From Octopus sinensis (taxonomy: Eukaryota): a DNA stretch of 64,000 bases. Both the position numbers and the translations under genes were made by a program. Below the pieces are notes generated by a model. That model searched no databases and had not been told where the DNA came from. It saw nothing but the letters and a program-made list of their open reading frames with translations. Position 1 is the first letter of the stretch. The number at the start of each line of letters is the position of its first letter. The stretch is from the NCBI RefSeq assembly GCF_006345805.1, contig NC_043002.1, positions 3,038,001 to 3,102,000 of the forward strand, in the 5' to 3' direction. Shown here in pieces: positions 1-63,207 of the stretch.

Positions 1-603
1 CATTCCCCTACCACCCCACCGCATGAAGCTGCAGCCATGTTACCCCTTGAATCCTCGTAATAAAATCCCAATTCCTCAATCTAAATCCATGGCTGGTTTT
101 TATCCATCTCTGTCCTCGGTAGCTTCTAATTAACAAACCAATTAATGAAATCATTCTCTTTACTACAGAGACTTGAGGAGAAACAAATGTTCTGCTTAGA
201 AACACTGGGCTTATGTTTTGCTTTTTTTCAATTAGAAACTCATTAATATATCACAGTAATTAATGATAAACCTATGAAGAATAAATTTATAAATGAGAAA
301 AGGAAATAAATTAGAGGAAAACTTCCAGTAATTGCCGGCCAAATGAGAAAGGAAGAGAATCCAACAGAAATGAAATTTTACATTTTATCTCTAAGAATAT
401 TTCTCTTTTACTTGTCTCAGACATTAGACTGTGGCCATGCTGTGGCACCGCCTTCAAGACTCTCTTAAGTGAAACAAATCAACCCCAGTACTTTTTTTTT
501 TTTTAAAGCCTGGTACTTATTCTATTTTGCTGAACTGCTAAGTCATAGGGACACAAATTACACTGTCACCAGTTGTCAAGAAGTGGAGTACAAACACAAA
601 GGA

Positions 604-2169: not shown

Positions 2170-2230
<61 letters not shown>

Positions 2231-2457
2231 GAAATATTAAAATAACTAAGTCTCTCTAAAAGAGAACAGCGGCAACGTTCCCGGAAAATAATAGTTATTG
2301 CCATACTAATATGGCATTCTTATAAAAATAAGAAAAAAGCTGTCCGCTTATTAGCTCCATGAGGCCATCGTCTTAAGTTAGCTATTTGATACACAAACTG
2401 TATCCATATAACCTTCAAACAAGGGAGGTCAGTCGCTCCACACTACTTGACCAGCAG

Positions 2458-2497
2458 CTACAGACGCGTTTCGGGGTATTGCCCCTTTTCAATGCAG
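2458..2497 (-). ncRNA. Minimal type I hammerhead ribozyme (U3-A8 core variant)
   Basis: Minus-strand CTGCA-TTGAAAA-GGGG(caata)CCCC-GAAAC-GC-GTC-TGTAG: stem I CUGCA/UGUAG, stem II G4/C4, palindromic stem III ACGCGU, GUC cleavage triplet. Confidence 0.75.
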
Positions 2498-2863
2498 CGT
2501 AGCCAGCCAGTAGGTGTCGCTTCCGACAATCTCTGTTCGATGGTTTTATTTACCTAGTTTCGGTGGAATACATCCACTTGTTTTCAATAATAGAAATATT
2601 AAAATAACTAAGTCTCTCTAAAAGAGAACAGCGGCAGCATTCCCGGAAAATAATAGTTATCGCCATACTAATATGGCATTCTTATAAAAATAAGAAAAAA
2701 GCTGTCCGCTTATTAGCTCCATGAGGCCATCGCCTTAAGTTAGCTATTTGATACACAAACTGTATCCATATAACCTTCGAACAAGGGATGTATTCCACCG
2801 AAACTAGGTAAATAAAACCATCGAACAGAGATTGTCGGAAGCGACACCTACTGGCTGGCTACG

Positions 2864-2903
2864 CTGCATTGAAAAGGGGCAATACCCCGAAACGTGTCTG
2901 TAG
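2864..2903 (+). ncRNA. Minimal type I hammerhead ribozyme copy (stem III palindrome altered to ACGTGT)
   Basis: Same motif as 2458-2497 with one C>T change at a CpG in stem III. Confidence 0.65.
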
Positions 2904-3225
2904 CTGCTGGTCAAGTAGTGTGGAGCGACTGACCTCCCTTGTTCGAAGGTTATATGGATACAGTTTGTGTATCAAATAGCTAACTTAAGGCGATGGCCTC
3001 ATGGAGCTAATAAGCGGACGGCTTTTTTCTTATTTTTATAAGAATGCCATATTAGTATGGCGATAACTATTATTTTCCGGGAACGCTGCCGCTGTTCTCT
3101 TTTAGAGAGACTTAGTTATTTTAATATTTCTATTATTGAAAACAAGTGGATGTATTCCACCGAAACTAGGTAAATAAAACCATCGAACAGAGATTGTCGG
3201 AAGCGACACCTACTGGGTGGCTACG

Positions 3226-3265
3226 CTGCATTGAAAAGGGGCAATACCCCGAAACGCGTCTGTAG
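3226..3265 (+). ncRNA. Minimal type I hammerhead ribozyme copy, intact
   Basis: CTGCA TTGAAAA GGGG CAATA CCCC GAAAC GC GTC TGTAG, exactly 362 bp from the previous copy. Confidence 0.75.
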
Positions 3266-3435
3266 CTGCTGGTCAAGTAGTGTGGAGCAACTGACCTCCC
3301 TTGTTCGAAGGTTATATGGATACAGTTTGTGTATCAAATAGCTAACTTAAGGCGATGGCCTCATGCAGCTAATAAGCGGACAGCTTTTTTCTTATTTTTA
3401 TAAGAATGCCATATTAGTATGGCGATAACTATTAT

Positions 3436-3534
<99 letters not shown>

Positions 3535-4204: not shown

Positions 4205-7061
4205 GCACTAGATTACAGTTTCAATATCAGGCAACTTCACAAAGTACTTTAGCTTCATCATCGCTTCAGAATTAATTTTTTAATTTTCCTGTTAATAGGA
4301 CAACGATGAAGTTAAATGACTAAACTTTAAACAGCAACTGCAGTAAATTAGGGGATTCACATTACCATAACATTCATTGATGATATGATCCCTTACAAAT
4401 ATTAACTCCAATTATTATTGCTGTTGCTGCTGCACAAATTAATTTATTATTTTAAATGTATCTTAATTTGTATGAAGAGAAAGCAAAAAATATAGATATG
4501 TGGTTCCAGGTTCAGTCCCACTGCTGGTATCTCAGGCAAATGTCTTCTACTATAGCCTCAAGCCAACCAAAGTCTGTGAGTGGATTTGGTAGACAGAAAC
4601 TGAAACAAGCCTCTGTGTGGGGGGGGGTGACTGTATGTGTGTGTGTGTGACTGTGTGTATGTGACCACCACTTAACAACTAGTGTCAGTGTATTTATGTC
4701 CCCATAAATTAGCAGTTTCACAAAACAGACCAACAGAACAAGTATCAGAAATGGAAAGAGAAATAAGTCCTGGGTTGGAGTCCGACTAAAAGTTCTTCAA
4801 AGCAGTAATCCAGCATGGCTGCAGTCCAATGACTGAAGCAAGCAAAGGATAAAATATCAATCTGGATCTCTCCTTCTCTCACACACACACACACACGATG
4901 CATATGGCTGTTGTGATTTAGCAAATAGAAAGAAAGAGGTGAAAGGAGTTAAGAAATTTTAAACTAGGTCAGTCGTTTTGTGTGACAGAGAATATACTTG
5001 CACAAAAAAAGACATGAAGACACTGTTGCTCAGGGACGGTTGCCTGTAGCAACGGTGTAACTTGTTTTTTATATATTTGTTAACAATCTTAACTAAAAAA
5101 AAATGTAACAATGAAAAAAAGCAGCACATAGACATAAATGATTTGTGGGGAGAACTACATGTAAATAAGTTTGGTGCCTTACAATTCTGAAATTAACTTG
5201 ATGGAATGTGAAACAATAGGTAATGTGAAAAAATAAATAAATTCTAAATTTTCTCCACATAAAAGCAAAACAACATTGATTAAAGTTAGAAGCAGCCAGG
5301 GTTGCAGAATAAAAAATTTGCAGTCGGAAAAGCAAAAATGTTATGCTTGACAGTTTCATGCAATGCATGTTAGAGTAACAGGGAAAAAAAGGACTCAAAA
5401 AGTTTTTTAAAATCCAACATTTGATTGATCAGTTAATCCTTTTTCCTTAAACTACACAGTATCTGCCTAAAATAATTTCCTTTACAAAAAGACTGGATTA
5501 TTGAGAATGTTGGAATGTCTTGAACGAAGAAATTAAGTTGTTTAATTTTCAGCTTACCTAAAAACTCATTTTTTAAAACATTCTTTTTCTTATCATAGCT
5601 GTTGCTTAAAAGAAACAAATTTATTATTGTTGTTGTTGTTCCAAATGCTATAAATTTTCAGGTAGAGATCCTGGTACGGAAAATAAAAAATCCTGTTAAA
5701 AAATTATTTCTCTAGACAAAGTTTATTTCGAATACAGAGTAGGCAGTTATCTCCCCTACACTTTAAGGCTGTAAAAACGAATCTCTTACGGGAAAGCCAC
5801 CTTCAAACAAAGGAAAATGTTAAGATTTTTGTGATTTTAGGATTTAGAAAGAATAAAAGAAAACCCACAAAGTGTTTCTATGCTCCTAAATAAAGAATGA
5901 AGTTATTAGTTATGAGATCCTCGGTGAAATTTTAAATAGAAACTAATTTCAAATGTTTAGAGGTTATACAATATTTGTTTTTACCAACAAAAATACATTT
6001 CAAAATCTTTTGTTGCTTCTAGAATTTTTTGCCTTTTTTGGAAAGATTAATATCTGCAAATATTTGAAATAACAATACATTAACTTATAATCAAATCAGG
6101 AAAACAAACAACAAAATATGGAGAAGACTATAGAATAATAATAATAATAAATCTAAATAAAATGCAGTTTTAATATATTAATTACAAACATGCAAGTATC
6201 AGCTGAAAATAAACAATGTTAATTAAATATTTTAATGAGACACATTATAAATAGCCAGGTGAAAGATGGGAAAAAGCAACGGGCCTTTCAATGGCCCCGT
6301 TGGGTCTTTCCAGTTTAAAATTTCTCCTATTGTTTTCTACAACTTCAGATGGAATGGTTCATCACAGATTGTAGAGTATTTGATGTAATATGAAACATTT
6401 CTTGTATTTGGACAGGGGCTAAGACCAAAATTGTGTCAAACAGGTCAGCTCAAGCTCCTTCACAAACAGGAATTCCGAAAATCCTCCACCCAATCTGCCT
6501 ATTTCTTTTTTTATAATTCTATAACAACGCGTTTATGTAAGCAACACCAAGATGAGCAAAACTTAGTTTTAGAATTAAGCAATAGATTATGAAAGACAAC
6601 AGCACAACACACATTTTAGTCAATTCAACAAAAATATCAACACTTGGAAAACAAAAGGCATACCAAAAGAAGAACCTGATTTTAAAATAACGATCAACAG
6701 AAAATATCACACAAAAAAAAAAGAAAGATTAACCAGAGCTATTGAATGTCACATGCCAGTTTCTAATTTTTACCCTAAAATGTTATTTCAATGACACAAA
6801 GGAAACACAATTCAACCAAATAAATTTGGTTCTACAAAAGATATTAAACACAAACAACATCAAAAACGATAAAAAGAAACTAGAAAAACAAGATCCGATC
6901 AGAGGAGCAAACAGTTAGCATTGGACCTTATAATTGTTGACTAATGACAACATCGGTGATTATTACAAAAATTCTTTTAGATGTAGCTTGATTCTGATGA
7001 ACTAAATCTAAATTTTCGTGAAGAATTGTATGGCTGTAGATGGGAAATTAGATCAACTGAC

Positions 7062-7382
7062 CTGGTTCTGAGATGTAGACGATGTTGAAAAGCTTAAACA
7101 AAGCTACCTGGGCAGCCGCTGCCTTGGCAAGTTTCTTGCTGCGACCAGCCCCCTGCACCGTTTGGTCATTAGCCTTTACCGACATGACAAAATTCCTATC
7201 ATGAGGAGGACCAGATTCTGACATCAGTTCATAAACCAAAGGTTCGGGCAACAATTCATTTAGATACATAACCGGGTTTTTGGTTGTAAGAGTTGGTTTA
7301 AGAGACTGCGTTCCTTTGTTCTCATTGTCAGCATTGTCTTCAACAGTTTCAATTATAACATTAGGATCTTCAGTGGAGTTTC
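7062..7382 (-). CDS. ADAR2: Internal exon of an ADAR-family (ADAR2-like) adenosine deaminase encoding one complete dsRNA-binding domain
   Basis: Translation ...TTKNPVMYLNELLPEPLVYELMSESGPPHDRNFVMSVKANDQTVQGAGRSKKLAKAAAAQVALFKLFNIVYISEP matches the ADAR2 dsRBD pattern (KNPVMxLNEL, SESG, FVMSV, GRxKKLAKAxAAQxAL..FN). Acceptor ctaat..tttgttttcaactgtttttatttag|GA, donor CCAG|gtcagt. Length 321 nt, phase 1 to phase 1. ADAR2 versus a cephalopod ADAR-like paralog cannot be settled from one domain. Confidence 0.85.
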
Positions 7383-8517
7383 CTAAATAAAAACAGTTGA
7401 AAACAAAGTAATTAGAGAATAGGACACGAAACATTTCCTACCTCTACATAACTGATTACGACAACTACTTATCGCAAGCAACTAACAAATTAAGCAGAAC
7501 CATTCCAAAAGAACTCTACCATTTAAACAAATCCTGCTAAATCTACTCAACAGATGATCAAAATCTAAGAATCTACTGCGAACACAAAGCATGTGACAGC
7601 AAACATTCACTGAATCAAATTCAGGTGTCCAATTACTACTATGTTAGGTAGCAGTAAATGAAATATATACCATAAGGAACAATGTGATATCAACTAATTT
7701 TACTACAAAAACTGAATTCAAACAAAAGCAGATATGAAGCACAAATACGAAACAAACAGAAAAGAAAACTGAGACAAGCATTTCTAATAAAGAAACAAAA
7801 TTTCATACTAAAAATATCTGGAAAAAGCTCTCAAAACTGGAAAAACATTGTTTCATGATTACTGAAAATGCCATTTATAACTGGATTGTGGAATTGAGAT
7901 GTTAATACAGCAACAGTCGACAAGTGTTCTTAGAAGATCAAGTTCAATCGAAATATATACAACATGGGAATTATTAACCCTAATACTTACAGAAAAACAA
8001 CAACATTGTTTTCATGTTCGTTATAAAACTAAGAACCTTATTTGACCCAAAAAAAAAAAAAAATTAATAATAATTATCATAAATATAAAGGGGGAACAAA
8101 TGAAAAACTGAATCTGTTGATGGAATTAGAATATCGCATCAAATTATTCTCAGCAGAGAATTTAATTGTTTTGGATTTTAGTTTAAGCTCCAAATGTTGA
8201 AAAAAATAGGTTTCGTTTTTTGAACAGATTTTGGCACTTTTCCCAAATTCAGAATGGAAAAGAAAAACAGACAACAGCTGGATTCAAATGAAATACACTT
8301 AGCTTCTGGTGGTTGAACGAGCTAATTCCATTTGCTAACCTCTGACCTTTCGGACAATGATGAAAAACTGCATTCCCTCGTTTTTAATTATTAAAGACCC
8401 ACAAATGTATTCTAATGGCCCCAGAGCGAAAGCTGAGACTAGTAAAAAAACTGACAGAAATCTAGGTTCCTTTGTGGGGTTTTTTCGAATCCATATTTTG
8501 AACAAAATATTGCAGTG

Positions 8518-15679: not shown

Positions 15680-15901
15680 TTAACCCTTTTGTTACCAACC
15701 CGGCTAAAACCAGCTCTGGGTACAAATGTCTTGTTTTCATAAGTTTTGAATTAAAATTTTCCACCAAACCTTAGTCACAATTTATGTTCCTGACACTAGC
15801 TCAATGATAACTAAGTTATTTTACTAAATTCTTTGTTATATTTTAAATAATTGAAAGAAACACAGAACATCTCAAAATTAATACAGTAACGAAAGGGTTA
15901 A
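15680..15901 (+). mobile_element. Non-autonomous TTAA-ended (piggyBac-like) MITE
   Basis: ttaa-cccttttgttac ... gtaacgaaaggg-ttaa; 222 bp. Confidence 0.7.
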
Positions 15902-17905
15902 TAATAATAATGTTATTTTACTGAATTCTTTGTTAATTTTCAAACTTAGATAAAACAAAGGCAGTGTTTTTCAACAGAAAAATGGTAAGAAAAGAGTTTA
16001 AACATAAAGTCTTATAGAAATAATATGCAAAAAAGTGATATCTTCAAAATGTTCCTTAAGCTCATGAAAAGAAGGAAAAAAAAAGCCAAATATTAGAGTC
16101 GTAGACATTAAGGAATTTTGCAAACAGAGAATACATTTGAAATAATGATAATAATGATGATGATGATGATGATAGTTTCAAATTTTGGCACAAAGTCAAG
16201 AATTTCAGTGGAGAGATAAGTCAATTATATTGACACCAGTGTCCTTATTTTATAGACCCCAGCAGGATTTGAACTCAGAATGAAAAGACAGGCAAAATGC
16301 CACTGAGCGAGTTGCCTGGCATGCTAACAATACTGCCAGCTTTCCACCTTAATAATAATAATAATAATAATAATGTGGCCAATAAAATATGCCCGTTAAC
16401 TATGCAGGTATACACACACACAACCTTTGTTATCAGGTGTTAAAATTGTTATTGATGTATTCTGTGACTCATCTAATACATTAACTAATAGATGAGAGTG
16501 AAATGAAGTTTAACCGCTAGACGTCCACAGGCAGGGTAAATACGGATGCCGATAATATGAAGAGAACGGTAAAGTATAAAAGACAAAGAGAACAACGGAA
16601 AAGGTCGTTCCAACAATGTTTTTTAGATTTTATTCCTAACTGTCCAAATTATTAGAAACATCATTTTGGTAGCGAATCAATAATACAACAAACAGATCAG
16701 TTGCAAAAAGGCGGCAGCAGCAGCTGGTTTGCAGACCGACTCTCTCCACCACGAATCTACAGTCAGTGAAGAATTTCAGTTTTCTTAAAACATTTCTTAC
16801 ATAATCTATAAATAATTCTAAGAAGATTTCCTCCTCCCTCCCCACCCCCACCTCCTATTTTACAATGTTTTTCTAATTATAAAAGATACTTCCATAAATT
16901 CTGGTTCATGAATAAATTTATAAGTAAACGTTTTCACAGCTGAATGACCTGCTTTGCGAGTGAACAACCATCAGAACATCGGATGGCATTTATGGAGTTT
17001 TTATTCCATTCCTCAATCAATCACATCAACAACTCTGTGTTTGGCTGAGGGTCGGGGAGGGGCAGAGGTGTATTACTATAAATACTTTCAGGTAAAGAGA
17101 GGCCGGGTTGAAAGAGTGCTAAGCCCACTGACCAACAGTTTACACCCAATTAAATGATATCAATGATGACCACATTACTTTTAAGCCACTATTGTAGCTT
17201 GTGGGTCACTGTAGGGTTGAGGTGAAAGCTGAAGAAGGCCATAGGGAGGCAATGTGAGAAAGACCATTCCGGCCCTTTATCTCAAAAAGATAACCTACTG
17301 CATCCTTTTAGTTTAATTAAGCAATTATTTCCCATCCCTTGCTCAATTTAATAAGCTCCTGTTTATTCTTTGAGAAACCTGAAGAAATACATTTACAAGT
17401 TGAAAATTCTTAGTAATTGGCTGAACTAGTAATTCCATGACCAGGAACTCAGATCTCCTTATTCTAGATTCAGTGGCATTCAACTGAGACCCAGAGAAGA
17501 TCTTATTAAAACTCATCTGAAATAAATCAGTTATACTTCTACAATACGCAAAATATTAATTTTTTAAATCCAATTCCCAATAATATTTGATTAGTAAGAT
17601 TTTCCTCTTTTTTGTTTTATATATGGTGAATGGCTATGGAGGTCCAGTCAAGTAAAACAGGAATCAAAGAGATCCAAGGGCCAAAAATGGTTGAGAACGA
17701 CTGTTCTAGAGAATTCTTGCTTCGGTCTAACAAAAGATTCCCCCATTCCTGAATTGTTAGGGTTCAGAAAGTTTATCCCAAGATGTAAAAGAAACATCTA
17801 GCATTGCATCATCTCAGCCATTATTTAATGCTGCAGATGAAGAAATTACCAATTCCATTATGAGGGCAAGTTGACCGACAGATCTGAACACTTCATCCAT
17901 GTCCA

Positions 17906-18128
17906 TTAACCGTTTTGTTACTGGATTTCTGTTGAGATGCTTTGTGTTTCTTTCAATTACTTTAAATATAACAAAGAATTTAGTAAAATAACTTAGTTAT
18001 CATTCAGCTAGTGTTAGGAACATAAATTGTGACTACGGTTTGGTGGAAGATTTTAATTCAAAACTTATGAAAAGAAAACATTTGTACTCGGGAGCCAGTT
18101 TCAGCCGGTTTGGTAACGAAAGGGTTAG
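17906..18128 (-). mobile_element. Second copy of the same TTAA MITE in the opposite orientation
   Basis: Reverse complement of 15680-15901 with scattered mismatches. Confidence 0.7.
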
Positions 18129-22828: not shown

Positions 22829-23190
22829 ACCAGTGTCACATAACCAGCCCACTCAAAAGTACCTTGGATCGTAGGGTGACATGCCGTGCTTGAGGGGACC
22901 TATTGAGTCGAGTACATCAAAATCAAATGGAAATTGCAGCTGTGATCCCTGTGCTGGTGGCACGTTAAAAGCACCAACCAATCATGGTCATTGCCAGCCC
23001 CCTCTGGCCCTGTGCCAGTGGCACGTAAAAAGCACCCACTACACTCTCAGAGTGGTTAGCGTTAGGAAGGGCATCCAGCTGTAGAAACACTGCCAGATCA
23101 GACTGGAGCCTCCTGACTTCCCAAACTCCAGCCAAACCGTCCAACCCATGCCAGCATGGAAAACGGACGTTAAACAATGATGATGATGAT
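22829..23190 (+). mobile_element. SINE family A
   Basis: Ends ccaacccatgccagcatggaaaacggacgttaaacaatgatgatgat. Confidence 0.8.
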
Positions 23191-23334
23191 GTCATGTCTA
23201 CCATGTGACCTTTTCTTTTCTTTCTTTTTATAGTAAAACAACAACAACAACAACGATCTATAAACTCATGGACAGAGCATTGAGTTTCACCACTGAAACC
23301 CCTGAACACAATCCTCTTTGTCATAAGACTTCAA

Positions 23335-27419: not shown

Positions 27420-27772
27420 GTGCCACGTGGTCAATGCTAGTGTCCCCTGGCTGGCTCCCGTGCCAGTGGCACATAAAAAGTACCATCCAAACATGATCGA
27501 TGCCAGTGCCCCGTAACTGGCTCCTGTGCAGATGGCACATAAGAAGCACCATCCAAATGTGATCGATGACAGGCCCGCCTAACTGGCCCCTGTGCCAGCA
27601 GCACGTAAAAAGCACTCACTACACTCTCAGAGTGGTTGGCATTAGGAAACACAGCTGTAGAAACACTGCCAGATCAGATTGAAGCCTGATGCAGCCAGTC
27701 TTCCCAGACCTCAGTCAAATTGTCCAACCCATGCCAGCATGGAAAACAGACATTAAACGATGATGATGATGA
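27420..27772 (+). mobile_element. SINE family A
   Basis: Internal tandem units plus (GAT)n tail. Confidence 0.75.
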
Positions 27773-28035
27773 TATCCATCTATTTAAGGCCTTGTGCCTT
27801 AAGTAGAAGGGATTATTATTATTATAAAGGCAGCAAGCTGGCAGGATTGTTAGCATGCTGGGCAAATACTTAACAGCATTTCTTCCGTCTTCATGTTCTG
27901 AGTTCAAATTCAGCCAAGGTTGGCTTTGCCTTTCATCCCTTCCCTTCGGCATCAATAAAATAAATACCAGTCAATCAATGTAATCAACTAGCCCCCACCT
28001 CTGAAATTGCTGGCCTTGTGCCAGAATTTGAAGCC

Positions 28036-31748: not shown

Positions 31749-32137
31749 TTGGGTTGTCCGGAAAGTTCGAGCCGATTTATAGTAGCTTACCTTTCGACTT
31801 ATTTTAGAACATGATTGAGTCCATAAAATAGGATTTGACTACACTTCCATTTAGAGCACAGTTTAAGCTATCTCTTCTTGGAAAAAGGTTTATGTTCCTA
31901 TAACCTGTGTTAATTCTGTAACCCTTTAAATTGGAAGATAAGAAAGTTCATTTTCGGCACTTGATGCTTTTCTTTTTCCGTAAAGGAAAAAATGTGTCAC
32001 AAGCAACCAAAGAAATATGCACAGTTTACGGAGATGTTACTTTATCTGAAAGAACTGTATGGAAGTGGTTCGCAAGGTTCCGAGCTGGAGATTGTAGCTT
32101 TATTGATAAAGAGCAATCAGGTAGACCATCCACCATT
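31749..32137 (+). mobile_element. Mariner 5' fragment (TIR plus N-terminal HTH region)
   Basis: ORF 31931 EDKKVHFRHLMLFFFRKGKNVSQATKEICTVYGD..SERTVWKWFARFRAGD...SGRP is a Mos1/Hsmar-type N-terminus; truncated after SGRP. Confidence 0.85.
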
Positions 32138-32476
32138 CATTGTCTCTTCACCAAATCTACTCACAATGATCTGATTGACCTGAGGTTATATAGAAGCCCA
32201 TGGTGTTGCTCAGTGGAACCCAAGCCCAAAACGATATTTTCTGGAAGCAGTGTGCAAGTCTATACATCTGCATGCATCAACTATGACTGTAACACAATTT
32301 CAACTGATGCCTTTACTCGAATGTCTTCCTGAGCCTAAGTGGCACAGATGTGGCTTCTCAGTCCTGGTAGTGACCCACATACTTTTGCACAGATGTGGGA
32401 ATGATGAGCACCTCTTCATGGAATTTTCCAGTCAGTGCGGTTTGCTTTCCTCCGTTACAACCAGCCATAGTATGCT

Positions 32477-32750
32477 ACATCATCATCATCGTTTAACGTC
32501 CACTTTCCATGCTAGCATGGGTTGGACGTATGACTGAGGGTTGGCAAACCAGATGGCTGCACCAGGCTTCAATCTTGATCTGGCATAGTTTCTACAGCTG
32601 GATGCCCTTCCTAACGCCAACCACTCCAAGAGTGTAGTGGGTGCTTTTTACGTGCCACCAACACAAGTGCCAGTCAGGCGGTACTGGCAACGACCTCGCT
32701 CAAATCTTTTACACATGCCACCAGCACAGGTGCCAGTAAGGCAATGCTGG
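32477..32750 (-). mobile_element. SINE family A
   Basis: Close match to 604-957. Confidence 0.8.
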
Positions 32751-33134: not shown

Positions 33135-34297
33135 TTTTTTTCTGTAGTTTCAGCTCAGAGCTGCGGCCATGCTGATGCACCGCCATTTGTGCTGCACTGT
33201 TATTACTGAGAGCCTCCTCCAATATGCGGCACTTGGTGAAGAATTGAGTTTGATATAGCTGCCCTCATTTGCACCTCTTGCCGTGAGGTAGGTTCATCTG
33301 GGACTCTCGACAGGAAAAGGTCCAGCTTTGATTTAAAAAACCCTACATCTACTTTGTGCAGGTTCCTCAGGTTCTTTGGGAGAATATTAAAAAGCTGTGG
33401 GCCTTTGAAACCCAGGCTGTTTCAGTAAATGGTCCTGAAGCACGATGGCGTTGCTGGAATTTTTGACACTATGCAGTGTTGTTCCGTTTTGGCATTGGTG
33501 TAGCTTTCAATGCCAAAATTTGGCACTATTACTTCCAGGATCTTCCAGACATATATTACTGCATACTTCTCCCGTCTTCTCTCCAGGGAGTAGAGTCTTA
33601 GCTGTTTCAACCTTTCCCAGTAGCTGAGCCGTTGCAAAGAGACAATCTTCTTTGTGAATCTTCTCTGGATTGCTTCAAGGTCCGCTGTTAATTTTACACA
33701 GGTAGGTGGCCATAGCTGTGAACAGTAATCCAGGTGGCTGAGAATGAATGTCCTCCAGAGGACCATCATGGTTTCCTTATCTCTGGTTCCGAATGTTCTC
33801 AGGATCCATCCAGCCAGTCGTCTGCACTATGTCGCCATCCTGGTAATGTGCACTTGGAAAGAGGTATCATCACTCATGTCAATACCAGGTCCCTCACTGA
33901 TTTAGGCTCTGGGATTGAAATTCCCTGTGGACCAGTGTACCCTGTAAGTTTCATATTTAGTTTTGGATGCTGGTAGCACAGGGCTTGGAATTTTCCAGCA
34001 TTAAACTGCATATTATTATCCCCAGCCCATCTGTAGATTGAGTCCAAATCCTGCTGCAGATGTGCAACATCGCTGGGGTTCTGTATTTTCTGCGAGACTT
34101 TCGTATCGTTTGTGTAGCTTGCACGGGTGGCTATCCAGGCACTTGAGGGCATATCTGAGAGAGCCACTATAAAAAGTAGTGGTCCCAAGACAATGCCTTG
34201 TGGAACACCGCTCACTATTTGTGTGTTCATAGAGGTGGCTCCATTAGCCACTACTGTCTGACTCCTATCTTTCAGAAAGTCATGTAACCACACTCCA
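33135..34297 (-). mobile_element. 5'-truncated CR1-type LINE (RT C-terminal half and 3' UTR)
   Basis: WLHDFLKDRSQTV..SGVPQGIVLGPLLF..YTNDTK..LQQDLD..W...NMQFN..K and ..HLDYCSQLW..LEAIQRRFTK..SYWERLKQLRLYSLERRR. (TA)n on both flanks. Confidence 0.9.
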
Positions 34298-36517: not shown

Positions 36518-36893
36518 TGTCATGTACAAAAGAAGCCTTGGAACTGTCCAAATTTCGAAGACGCCGTATTGTGAGTTAATCTGAAGGTGAACTAATCTGA
36601 AAACCTTGGGATCCCGATTTCTACAGTTAATAGGGTGATTGTGCAATTCACTAGAGAGGGGAAGGAGTCCACATCACCTTGCCCAGGTCAACCAGGGCAC
36701 TCTAACAGGAGCCTTCTCTTTGCTAAGTGTGAAGGATAATCCTCGTTGCAACACCTCTGACATAGCAGAACAAGTTGATGGCTGTCCCAGAACAGCTGCC
36801 AGGTTTCTCCACAAACTTGGTTACTATGACAGAAGAGCAAGAAGAAAACCACTTCTTCAACCAGCCAATATCAAGTGGAGAAAAGATTGGCCC
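36518..36893 (+). mobile_element. Tc1-like transposase N-terminal fragment
   Basis: [28 protein letters not shown] and RFLHKLGYYDRRARRKPLL motifs with frameshifts. Confidence 0.7.
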
Positions 36894-37182
36894 AATCTAT
36901 ACTTACCTATACTTGTAAGAAAAAAAATCTTTTGCTATTTAAGCATCCAGTAAAAACAATACATTTTCCAGTCTGAAAACGGTTACTTGAAGCTCAAAAC
37001 TCATACCAGACTAATTAACTTGTAAACTTTATTAAGATTAAAATTAAAATTATCCCCCACCCCACCAGAAGAAAGCCATCTCTACTCATTTTTTCAAATA
37101 TATATAACACTGTACCAAGAACTTTTTATTACTCTACTACATACAGACATATATTTACACACACAGACACACATATATAACT

Positions 37183-37370
37183 GTGCGGGTGGCACGTAAA
37201 AAGCACCCACTACACTCATGGAGTGGTTGGCGTTAGGAAAGGCATCCAGCCGTAGAAACACTGCCAGATTTGACTGGGCCTGATGAAGCCTTCTGGCTTC
37301 ACAGACCCCAGTAGAACCGTCCAACCCATGCTAGCATGGAAAACGGACGCTAAACGATGATGATGATGAT
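37183..37370 (+). mobile_element. SINE family A 3' part; an oppositely oriented copy lies at about 37770-37970
   Basis: Tail motif shared in inverted orientation about 400 bp apart. Confidence 0.75.
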
Positions 37371-41759: not shown

Positions 41760-42235
41760 AGTGCCAAACCAAATCCTATGACTGGCACCCAGCCAATGCC
41801 AGTGCCACTGGACTTCCTGTGGAGGTGGCAAGTAAAGAAACACCATTTCGACCCTGTGCTTGAGGAGATCCATTGAGTCAAGTACACCGACATCAAAAAT
41901 CAATTGGAAATTGTAGTTGTGATCCCTGTGCCGGTGGCACGTAAAAAACACCATCCGAATGTGGCCGATGCCAGCGCTGCCTTGACTGGCTTCCGTGCTG
42001 CTGGCACGTAAAAAGCATCAACCGATCGTGGCCGTTACCAACCTCGCCTGGCACCTGTGCCAGTAGCACGTAAAAAGCACCCACTACACTCTCGGAGTGG
42101 TTGGCGTTAGGAAGGGCATCCAGCTGTAGAAACACTGCCAGATCAGACTGGAGCAGCCTCCTGGCTTTCCAGACTCCGGTCAAACTGTCCAACCCATGCT
42201 AGCATCGAAAACGGACGTTAAACGATGATGATGAG
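41760..42235 (+). mobile_element. SINE family A, long copy
   Basis: Three internal units plus tail. Confidence 0.8.
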
Positions 42236-50339: not shown

Positions 50340-50880
50340 ATCATCATCGTCGTTTAACGTCCGCTTTCCATGCTAGCATGGGTTGGACGATTTTGACTGA
50401 GGGCTGGTGAACCAGATGGCTGCACCAGGCTCCAATCTTGATCTGGCAGAGTTTCTACAGCTAGATGCCCTTCCTAACGCCAACCACTCCGAGAGTGTAG
50501 TGGGTACTTTTTACGTGCCACCAGCACGAGGGCCAGTCAGGCGGCACTGGCAACAACCTCGCTTGAATCTCTTTACACATGCCACAGCACAGGTGCTAGT
50601 AAGGCGACGCTGGTAACGATCACGCTCGAATGGTGCCCTTTTACATGCCACCAGCACGGAAGCCAGTTAGCCGCTCTGGCAACGATCATGCTCAGGTGGT
50701 GCTCTTGGCACTCTACTAGCATGGGCACAAGTGCCAGTAAGGCGACTCTGGTAACGATCACACTTGAATGGTGCCCTTTTATGTGCCACTGGCACGGAAG
50801 CCGGTTAGCCGCTTTGTCAACGATCACACTAGTATGGTTGTCTTTGCACCCTGCTAGCACGGATGCCAGTTGTCGGTTTT
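50340..50880 (-). mobile_element. SINE family A, long copy
   Basis: Tail catcatcatcgtcgtttaacgtcc followed by 4-5 internal units. Confidence 0.8.
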
Positions 50881-60484: not shown

Positions 60485-60584
60485 NNNNNNNNNNNNNNNN
60501 NNNNNNNNNNNNNNNNNNNNNNNNNNNNNNNNNNNNNNNNNNNNNNNNNNNNNNNNNNNNNNNNNNNNNNNNNNNNNNNNNNNN
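60485..60584. other. Assembly gap (100 N, probably unsized)
   Basis: Run of N. Confidence 1.
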
Positions 60585-62614: not shown

Positions 62615-63207
62615 TGTGGCACGTAAAAAGCACCAACCGATTGTGGTCGTTGCCAGCCTACCCTGGCACGTATAAAGCACCATCCATATGTGGCCAATGC
62701 CAGCGTCGCCTTGACTGGCTTCCGTGTCGGTGGCACATAAAAACTAACTCCAATTGTGGCCGTTGACAGCCTCCCCTGGCACCTGTGCCGGTGACACGTA
62801 AAAAGCACCATCCGTATGTGGTCGATGCCAGCGCCACTTTGACTGGCTTCCGTGTCGGTGGCACATAAAAGGCACCAACTGATTGTGGGACTTCCAGCCT
62901 CCCCTGGCACCTGTGCCGGTGGCACGTAAAAAGCACCATCCGTATGTGTCGATGCCAGCGCCACTTTGACTGGCTTCCGTGCTGGTGGTACGTAAAAAGC
63001 ACCAACCGATCGTGGCCGATGCCAGCCTCCCCTGGCACCTGTGCCAGTAACACATAAAAAGCACCCACTACACTCACGGAGTGGTTGGCGTTAGGAAGGG
63101 CATCCAGCTGTAGAAACACTGCCAGATCAGACTGGAGCCTGGTGCAGCCTCCTGGCTTCCCAGACTCGTGCTAGCAAGGAAAACGGATGTTAAACGATGA
63201 TGATGAT
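62615..63207 (+). mobile_element. SINE family A with an expanded internal higher-order repeat
   Basis: About seven alternating ~60-bp units (aaccgat-type and atccgtat-type) before the tail. Confidence 0.8.

Follow-up and report, generated by a model that had tools for sequence, protein, structure and literature searches.

Metazoan non-LTR (long terminal repeat) retrozymes are tandem repeats of 170–400 bp that carry type I hammerhead ribozymes and have a GC content of <50% (Cervera & de la Pena 2020, PMC7229834), and in coral, mussel and axolotl they are expressed as circular RNAs (circRNAs; PMC7229834). Penelope-like elements, which have been recorded in Octopus spp., occur as partial tandems, often with an adjacent inverted, 5′-truncated copy at the 5′ end that forms an inverted repeat, and they strongly favor microsatellites, (TA)n among them (Craig et al. 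2021, PMC8557442). Here, we describe an element that resembles both systems. It occupies positions 2225–3438 (∼1.2 kb) of a 64,000-nt stretch of the Octopus sinensis genome (NCBI RefSeq assembly GCF_006345805.1, contig NC_043002.1, positions 3,038,001–3,102,000; the whole stretch is referred to as the window), downstream of an exon of an ADAR2-type gene. We consider it probable that a small retroelement akin to the metazoan non-LTR retrozymes, non-coding and non-autonomous, inserted here once, into a (TA)n microsatellite. It looks like a new member of an already known class, namely a retrozyme-type hammerhead repeat with a Penelope-style insertion. The retrozyme and Penelope papers cited here mention no cephalopod retrozyme.

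Architecture of the inverted repeat

A repeat search of the window revealed inverted-repeat arms of 507 nt (2285–2791 and 2932–3438) that are 98% complementary and separated by a spacer of 140 nt (coordinate sum 5723). A second pairing register joins 2225–2575 to 2786–3136 (351 nt, 98%). Both values lie within 3 nt of those given in a first-pass annotation of the window, which had reported a 504-bp stem (2285–2788 with 2935–3438) and an alternative register of 349 bp. The same annotation had described the hairpin as built from hammerhead-bearing repeats, in agreement with the unit map and with the motif matches presented below. When the window was searched with the repeat unit by BLAST and the registers were mapped, 2225–3438 resolved into four partial copies of one 362-bp unit, which are placed between two microsatellite tracts as follows (microsatellites from Tandem Repeats Finder, TRF):

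2173–2227: (AT)27 microsatellite, left half of the putative target site (TRF: period 2, 27.5 copies, 100% matches)
2225–2575, minus strand: copy C, unit positions 1–351 (BLAST 98.3% over 351 nt)
2576–2791, minus strand: copy D, 5′-truncated, unit positions 147–362 (BLAST 98.6% over 216 nt), without a hammerhead
2786–2791: inversion junction GGATGT, identical to unit positions 1–6 (plus strand)
2786–3147, plus strand: copy A, complete 362-bp unit
3148–3438, plus strand: copy B, unit positions 1–291 (BLAST 98.3% over 291 nt)
3438–3531: right half of the putative target microsatellite, (TA)33 (3438–3503) followed by (AC)14 (TRF)

The copies form two arrays. The minus-sense array runs from 2791 to 2225 through unit positions 147–362 and then 1–351 (1.56 units in total), and the plus-sense array runs from 2786 to 3438 through positions 1–362 and then 1–291 (1.80 units). 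The arrays are arranged head-to-head, with their 5′ ends meeting at 2786–2791 and their 3′ ends pointing outward. The junction hexamer GGATGT also corresponds, with one mismatch, to the reverse complement of unit positions 147–152 (5/6 microhomology). The outer 3′ ends abut the microsatellite at the two TATTAT-like stretches of the unit: copy C adjoins (AT)27 at ...CTATTAT, and copy B adjoins (TA)33 at ...CTATTATTTT. No further copies of the 362-bp unit were detected by BLAST in the rest of the window.

The unit is 362 nt long and has a GC content of 41%. The longest stop-free stretch in the tandem consensus, in any frame, is 55 codons, and there is no LTR, primer-binding site (PBS) or polypurine tract (PPT). 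Apart from the unit itself, the element has no terminal repeats.

Structure of the hammerhead motif

A type I hammerhead motif is present in every full unit. To score the motif, a covariance model (R1) was built from four published cleaving retrozyme hammerheads only (coral Amil224, mussel Mg353, axolotl Ax353 and Ax330); their sequences were taken from the supplement of PMC7229834 and aligned, and the window was searched with filters off. R1 matched three copies over its full length and with all 13 pairs standard; two of them scored 34.8 bits and the third 32.0 bits, at E values between ∼5e-8 and 3e-7, and the next-best match in the 128 kb of searched strand reached 12.4 bits. The three motifs are located as follows:

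2457–2498, minus strand: hammerhead of copy C, predicted cleavage between 2463 and 2462 (R1 34.8 bits, E 4.8e-8, 13/13 pairs standard; also found by descriptor match and minimum free energy (MFE) fold)
2863–2904, plus strand: hammerhead of copy A, predicted cleavage after 2898 (R1 32.0 bits, E 3.3e-7)
3225–3266, plus strand: hammerhead of copy B, predicted cleavage after 3260 (R1 34.8 bits, E 4.8e-8)

A descriptor scan of the window returned the same three sites only, with C17 at 2898 (+), 3260 (+) and 2463 (−) and with the core of copy C starting at 2492, and none of 200 shuffles of the whole window contained any descriptor match. In the unconstrained MFE structure of the 86-nt region, the 6-bp helix I (GCUGCA/UGUAGC) is followed by a UAC/U internal loop, which is thus located 6 bp from the core, and then by a long rod. 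The core segment UUGAAAA leads into the 4-bp helix II (GGGG/CCCC, closed by loop 2, CAAUA), and the remaining core segments are GAAA and GUC. Helix III (A-CGCG-U) consists of 1 bp and a palindromic tetraloop. The UAC/U and CAAUA loops presumably resemble those of the Schistosoma ribozyme, a likeness that we take only as a lead.

This three-way junction, in which helix I is open-ended and 6 bp long, helix II has 4 bp closed by G10.1-C11.1, and the short helix III bears a palindromic loop, corresponds to the canonical metazoan type I form, in which helices I and II have 6 and 4 bp and a helix III of 1–2 bp carries a palindromic loop of 2–4 nt (PMC4209133). In all three copies, the only departures from the invariant core (C3 U4 G5 A6 N7 G8 A9 / G12 A13 A14 / A15.1-U16.1 H17) are C3→U and G8→A (UUGAAAA ... 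GAAA ... GUC). The resulting U3-A8 pair is a predicted isosteric replacement of C3-G8, and the same covariation is natural in Penelope-like elements of Schistosoma (Cervera & de la Pena 2014, PMC4209133). By every structural criterion that was applied, the motif is modeled as a hammerhead. The copies differ in loop 3, which is CGCG in copy C and has decayed to CGUG in copy A through a CpG transition; a G-U pair is still possible at this position in a dimeric helix III. The hammerhead of copy C, which has the U3-A8 core, is the only one that is sense to the ADAR-type gene. The first-pass annotation had placed an ‘intact’ hammerhead at 2497–2458; its position and its cleavage site (2463/2462) match ours, but the core contains U3/A8 instead of the canonical C3/G8. 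A U3-A8 core in a type I hammerhead of canonical architecture evades both Rfam and the standard CUGANGA descriptors, and such families may therefore be under-counted, including in cephalopods.

Dimer dependence and the predicted monomer RNA

By analogy with characterized ribozymes, a 1-bp helix III with a palindromic loop is best understood as a dimer-dependent design. The axolotl monomer with an equivalent helix III showed 6% cleavage in 1 h (PMC7229834), and cleavage of single minimal motifs was not detectable (PMC4209133). In line with this, RNAcofold predicted that two copies of the motif form a double hammerhead in which helix III becomes a 6-bp intermolecular ACGCGU/ACGCGU duplex (−72.1 kcal/mol, compared with 2 × −33.0 kcal/mol for the separate copies). 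The double hammerhead was retained in RNAcofold with the CGUG variant of copy A, via the G-U pair. In the plus array, the two ribozymes are 362 nt apart, in a head-to-tail arrangement with a 362-bp period, and the minus array contains one ribozyme and a truncated unit. The plus-strand transcript would thus contain the following product:

2899–3260, plus strand: candidate circRNA precursor, the 362-nt monomer expected from double cleavage of a plus-strand transcript

This monomer is predicted to be highly self-paired. Its MFE is −119.4 kcal/mol, compared with −90.2 ± 5.3 kcal/mol for shuffled sequences (z = −5.56), and none of 100 shuffles was as stable. In the proposed pathway, the tandem ribozymes of the plus-strand transcript would pair as a double hammerhead and free the 362-nt monomer, which would then be circularized by the host tRNA ligase. 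The expected circle junction is ...GAAACGCGUC|UGUAGC..., i.e. 2898/2899 joined to 3260/3261 on the plus strand. By analogy with published retrozymes, the ribozyme would serve the element and not the host.

Comparison with retrozymes and Penelope-like elements

The unit shares with metazoan retrozymes (PMC7229834) its size, its GC content, the absence of an open reading frame (ORF), the head-to-tail arrangement of type I hammerheads and the highly self-paired monomer, and its hammerhead is scored at 35 bits by the model of published retrozyme ribozymes. Helix III (A-CGCG-U) is like that of axolotl HHR_Amex1 (A-CAUG-U) and close to that of mussel ACGCGCGU (PMC7229834). The element differs from these retrozymes in two respects: its core contains U3-A8 in place of C3-G8, and it consists of 1.6 and 1.8 units arranged as an inverted pair, whereas the published elements form one direct array.

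The insertion pattern is that of Penelope-like elements (PMC8557442). The partial tandem has an adjacent inverted copy that is truncated at unit position 147, and the insertion site is a microsatellite, whose left and right halves are (AT)27 and (TA)33; a (TA)n bias is also reported for the Naiad clade. Further common features are the dimer-type hammerhead with a palindromic helix III, as found in the pLTR (pseudo-LTR) hammerheads of Penelope-like elements, the U3-A8 core as in the Schistosoma elements (PMC4209133), and paired hammerheads on opposite strands 100–700 bp apart (PMC8557442, PMC4209133). In contrast to Penelope-like elements, the insertion described here contains no reverse transcriptase (RT)/GIY-YIG ORF, has a period of 362 bp rather than the length of a multi-kb element, and shows no 30–40-bp tail. 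Its ribozyme has the canonical architecture, with 6 bp in helix I, 4 bp in helix II and the loops, and is not of the ‘minimal’ form of Penelope-like elements, and the (TA)n-targeting Naiad clade is without canonical hammerheads.

The topology of the insertion, with outward 3′ ends at TA-like sites, arms longer than one unit and microhomology at the center, suggests two cDNAs copied from a circular or multimeric RNA. Two cDNAs would have been primed from both 3′-OH ends of a cut TA-rich target, with priming at TA-like stretches of the template (...CUAUUAU, unit positions 351 and 289–291). Since each cDNA is longer than one unit (1.56 and 1.80), the template would have been a circular or multimeric RNA. 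The 5′ ends of the cDNAs would have been joined head-to-head at the 6-nt microhomology, and the inversion would be a by-product of integration. L1 twin priming, reportedly described by Ostertag and Kazazian in 2001, is said to proceed in a similar manner, with two cDNAs that start from both target 3′ ends and are joined head-to-head, with microhomology at the internal junction. The topology observed here is the same, with 3′ ends outward and internal microhomology. Unlike in L1 twin priming, the template was seemingly circular or multimeric, there is no poly(A), and the enzyme was presumably of the Penelope type and not L1 ORF2p. The footprint is clean, and its outward 3′ ends at TA-like sites, arms of more than one unit and microhomology center would tie retrozyme-type circular or multimeric RNAs to a Penelope-style integration that is twin-primed and targets (TA)n.

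Authenticity and alternative origins of the element

The differences between the copies indicate how the element has aged. None of the 11 variable sites is shared between copies; each is private to one of them. When the junction site is left out, 5 of the 10 remaining sites are CpG→TpG/CpA transitions, whereas only 8.8% of unit positions are in CpG (binomial P = 9e-4). Private, CpG-biased differences are the signature of germline mutation and not of sequencing errors or fold-back reads, and the copies are therefore real, aged DNA. Each copy diverges from the consensus by ∼0.8%, which indicates a young insertion, though not one that has only just occurred. Of the 10 substitutions since insertion, 2 fall within the ribozyme (2.4 expected), i.e. 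there is no depletion.

With this record of decay, there is little probability that the inverted and tandem layout stems from misjoined sequence or from a chimeric read that folded back, or that the copy number is wrong. Structures of this kind often trouble assemblies (PMC8557442), long microsatellites are located on both sides of the element, and the assembly contains a gap within the window (a 100-bp run of N at 60485–60584). However, a fold-back would yield a perfect, symmetric palindrome, and the arms observed here are unequal (1.56 vs 1.80 units) and out of register; in addition, the private sites with their CpG-decay signature are not a product of sequencing error. The fold-back read artefact was rejected on the basis of the unequal arm lengths and the CpG-biased differences. 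A somewhat better case, though still an unlikely one, can be made for an origin at the DNA level without an RNA intermediate, in which a 362-bp segment was tandemly duplicated (as a minisatellite) at (TA)n and part of the array was later inverted, e.g. by template switching or hairpin-mediated rearrangement at palindromic TA repeats. Such an origin is compatible with the palindromic and fragile nature of (TA)n tracts, with the presence of another small fold-back element in a (TA)n tract 600 bp away (1372–1654), and with the finding of no other copy of the unit in the window or in ORF, protein and metagenome/viral/prokaryote searches that did not cover the host genome. But simple inversion within a tandem array would also require 11 nt to have been lost precisely at the breakpoint, given that position 351 of the unit would have been next to position 1, and it was rejected for this reason. 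Moreover, both outer ends are at TATTAT-like stretches, as expected of microhomology priming on a TA target, and a random duplicated segment would have neither a complete hammerhead of the retrozyme type nor a monomer fold that is self-paired, so that the unit would be retrozyme-derived even in this case. Fold-back elements have long inverted arms composed of tandem subunits. The arms described here resemble them, the TA-rich flanks are typical of Tc1/mariner-derived miniature inverted-repeat transposable elements (MITEs), and the window contains Tc1/mariner debris. It is nevertheless most improbable that the element is a fold-back or MITE-type DNA transposon with long terminal inverted repeats composed of subrepeats: its two arms differ in length and stop at different points of the unit, which leaves no defined matching termini, its unit is a hammerhead-bearing, retrozyme-sized repeat, and it contains no transposase relic. 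The mismatch of the termini led to the rejection of this candidate.

Several observations also weigh against the retrozyme-type insertion that we favor. The hammerhead core is U3-A8 and not the canonical C3-G8, and cleavage is predicted from sequence and fold only. Rfam hammerhead models gave no match at the gathering threshold (64 kb), at E ≤ 1 (1.7 kb) or at E ≤ 10 (111 nt); since these models, like the standard CUGANGA descriptors, miss a U3-A8 core, this result is explained by the core itself. The sub-threshold Rfam matches (mir-297, mir-1277 and snoR11) correspond to the flanking (TA)n/(CA)n microsatellites. The window contained neither a Penelope RT ORF nor one for GIY-YIG, and the element showed no 30–40-bp ‘tail’. 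A target-site duplication was not discernible, but any such duplication would be masked by the microsatellite. Cephalopod Naiads are old remnants (PMC8557442), and an origin by tandem duplication and inversion of DNA is formally conceivable, if unlikely. Most importantly, a mobile element is above all expected to be dispersed, and no second copy of the family was found in the window or in the collections searched. Family members were sought with ten exact short-ORF look-ups (including two junction-spanning ORFs), with a protein search using the 55-residue stop-free stretch over the ribozyme, and with a 24-nt pattern of the core and helix II in metagenome, viral and prokaryotic genome contigs. 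None of these searches returned a relative; the host genome is absent from the collections, which are ill-suited to a cephalopod repeat, so these negatives say little.

An ADAR2-type exon near the element

In the direction of minus-strand transcription, the element is preceded by an exon that the first-pass annotation had assigned to an ADAR-like gene:

7062–7382, minus strand: ADAR2-type double-stranded RNA-binding domain (dsRBD) exon, 321 nt, no stop codon, transcriptionally upstream of the element

The exon is contained in ORF 7048–7434 (−) and is delimited by an AG acceptor (7384–7383) and a donor after 7062 (CAG|GTCAGT), so the donor and the absence of a stop codon noted previously are both borne out. 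Its product is a dsRBD (Pfam dsrm, 3.2e-12) whose best match among solved structures is dsRBD2 of rat ADAR2. In a HMMER search against 1.84 billion representative proteins, the best homologues with a catalytic domain were A_deamin proteins (E 1e-26 to 1e-24), and DZF/ILF3 proteins started only at E 7e-21, which is ∼5 orders of magnitude worse. These matches support the ADAR assignment. A tree of the domain was poorly resolved, as the domain is too short, and it placed the exon outside both strongly supported DZF clades and nothing further.

The exon appears to be strongly conserved across apparently different species, as judged from two Logan contigs. In the contig from SRR11869391 (3.4 kb, aligned to window positions 4897–7865), the exon is 99% identical at the amino acid level, whereas the introns are ∼84% identical, and the exon is therefore under purifying selection. 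In the contig from ERR12370324 (1.3 kb, aligned to 7056–7299), the identity is ∼90% for protein and 80% for DNA. Both contigs end before they reach the element.

Other ADAR exons, including those of the deaminase, were sought by tblastn with 150 homologues (E < 5), and none that was convincing was found in the window outside 7051–7434. Likewise, tblastn (E < 5) detected no dsRBD1 or other ADAR-like exon over the 57 kb of sequence that lie upstream of this exon (7434–64000). This is explained either by very long introns or by exons that are too diverged or too short for detection. A match at 6330–6440 (E 0.06) was rejected as an exon, since the neighboring frames are full of stops. As the dsRBD exon has a good donor and no stop codon, and no further exon was found down to base 1, the element is likely to be located in an intron of the ADAR2-type gene, which agrees with the placement proposed in the first-pass annotation. 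A position of this kind is not unusual, as 42–44% of Xenopus retrozyme copies are intronic (bioRxiv 10.64898/2026.07.22.740005).

Consequences for the host transcript

A regulatory function for the element had also been proposed in the first-pass annotation, according to which the hairpin sequesters the sense hammerhead in the ADAR pre-mRNA and heavy A-to-I editing either releases the ribozyme, resulting in cleavage and negative feedback, or inactivates it. The ribozyme would thus act as a sensor of ADAR activity. Auto-editing is established for both ADAR2 and Drosophila Adar. The arrangement of the locus is in part as this proposal requires: the ADAR2-type exon, with its donor and without a stop, is 3.6 kb upstream on the same strand, and one structurally complete hammerhead is sense to the minus-strand gene and fully paired in both registers, as had been annotated. 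A long, perfect double-stranded RNA (dsRNA) is the classic promiscuous ADAR substrate. We nevertheless regard editing-gated feedback as very improbable. With copy D cut off at unit position 147, upstream of the ribozyme, the ADAR-sense RNA contains only one sense hammerhead, and a helix III of this type needs a second copy for efficient cleavage (PMC7229834, PMC4209133). In addition, this ribozyme copy is embedded in the 507-bp hairpin predicted for the ADAR-sense transcript of 2225–3438 (−968 kcal/mol). The antisense copies would be transcribed before the ribozyme, and zipping of the stem would begin at the adjacent loop, which disfavors escape during transcription.

The effect of editing was simulated in a crude but bracketing manner, with 25–100% of the stem adenosines edited, inosine treated as G or as unpaired, and 10 replicates per condition. 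Helices I and II of the ribozyme were present in the MFE structure of none of the 80 simulated edited transcripts, and all five essential core adenosines were left unedited in only one of the 80. As the core adenosines were nearly always edited in the simulation, editing that loosens the stem would also destroy the catalyst. The ribozyme shows no signal of constraint (2/10 substitutions vs 2.4 expected, as described above), and the known transposon integration pattern explains the whole architecture. The window also contains other inverted repeats and at least 14 copies of a short interspersed nuclear element (SINE)-like sequence in both orientations, so that dsRNA-forming introns are the norm here. 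Since intronic retrozymes are common and the window holds these other inverted repeats and SINE-like copies, a dsRNA-forming transposon pair needs no special explanation. The proposed editing-gated self-cleavage was thus not borne out by the single dimer-type copy, the stability of the hairpin and the simulations, and the fallback offered in the same annotation, a neutral recent insertion, is the better reading.

Precedents for ADAR enzymes that edit their own transcript are provided by ADAR2 (rat intron 4) and Drosophila Adar. The known auto-editing duplexes are short and conserved and contain a splice site or codon, whereas the hairpin described here is pure transposon sequence and is located 3.6 kb downstream of the nearest exon. 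Sense-strand hammerheads are also said to reside in host-gene introns of amniotes (HH9 and HH10, reportedly described by de la Pena together with Garcia-Robles in 2010). In contrast to these single, ultraconserved motifs, the hammerhead described here is young, decaying and of the dimer type. A closer parallel is offered by inverted Alu/SINE pairs, which also form transposon-derived intramolecular dsRNA in pre-mRNA and for which hyper-editing without site-specific function is expected. Unlike typical Alu pairs, the present duplex (507 bp, 98%) is far longer and more perfect, probably arose in one insertion event and not two, and carries a ribozyme.

The effect on the host would therefore seem to be passive: the pre-mRNA would gain a ∼507-bp hairpin, a plausible promiscuous substrate of ADAR and Dicer, that would be removed with the intron. 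By analogy with other long intronic duplexes, promiscuous editing of the hairpin is plausible. There is only a very slight chance that the ADAR2-type gene has co-opted the hairpin, whether or not the ribozyme takes part, to sense ADAR activity in cis within its own pre-mRNA, with hyper-editing of the ∼507-bp duplex altering splicing, nuclear retention or cleavage and thereby feeding back on ADAR dosage. Within this scheme, release of the ribozyme is very unlikely, whereas an editing-dependent effect of the duplex itself is compatible with the evidence. As a regulatory device, the element is probably unimportant and is best read as a passive transposon insertion. Whether functional or not, an exceptionally long, near-perfect dsRNA in the pre-mRNA of an RNA-editing enzyme, in a lineage described as heavily editing, would be a convenient natural reporter of promiscuous editing.

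Other repeats in the window

A second, unrelated fold-back element is formed by arms at 1372–1470 and 1556–1654 (99 nt, 94% complementary, with an 85-nt center). It is flanked by (AT)n tracts (1273–1336 and 1638–1698), contains no hammerhead and has a MITE-like look. Two inverted structures are thus present in TA microsatellites within ∼2 kb. Another inverted repeat pair, at 15720–15902 and 17905–18087 (183 nt, 91% complementary), is separated by 2 kb and could form dsRNA if transcribed.

The SINE-like copies show 69–93% identity and are the source of recurring spurious ORFs that contain LDALPNANHSESVVGAFYV. Examples are located at 603–819, 1989–2118, 22990–23200, 27583–27776, 32478–32690, 37181–37370, 42035–42234, 50340–50553 and 63020–63207. 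Debris of transposon proteins includes the N-terminus of a Mos1-type HTH_48 transposase (31931–32332, +), an RVT_1 RT fragment that is LINE (long interspersed nuclear element)-like (33422–34293, −) and the helix-turn-helix (HTH) region of a Tc3-type transposase (36639–36953, +). Finally, the region 773–936, which overlaps one of the SINE-like copies, contains three tandem-like copies of the GC-rich motif TTTTATGTGCCACCGGTACGGGGGCCAGTCAG, with a spacing of 64–67 bp and an identity of 74–81%.

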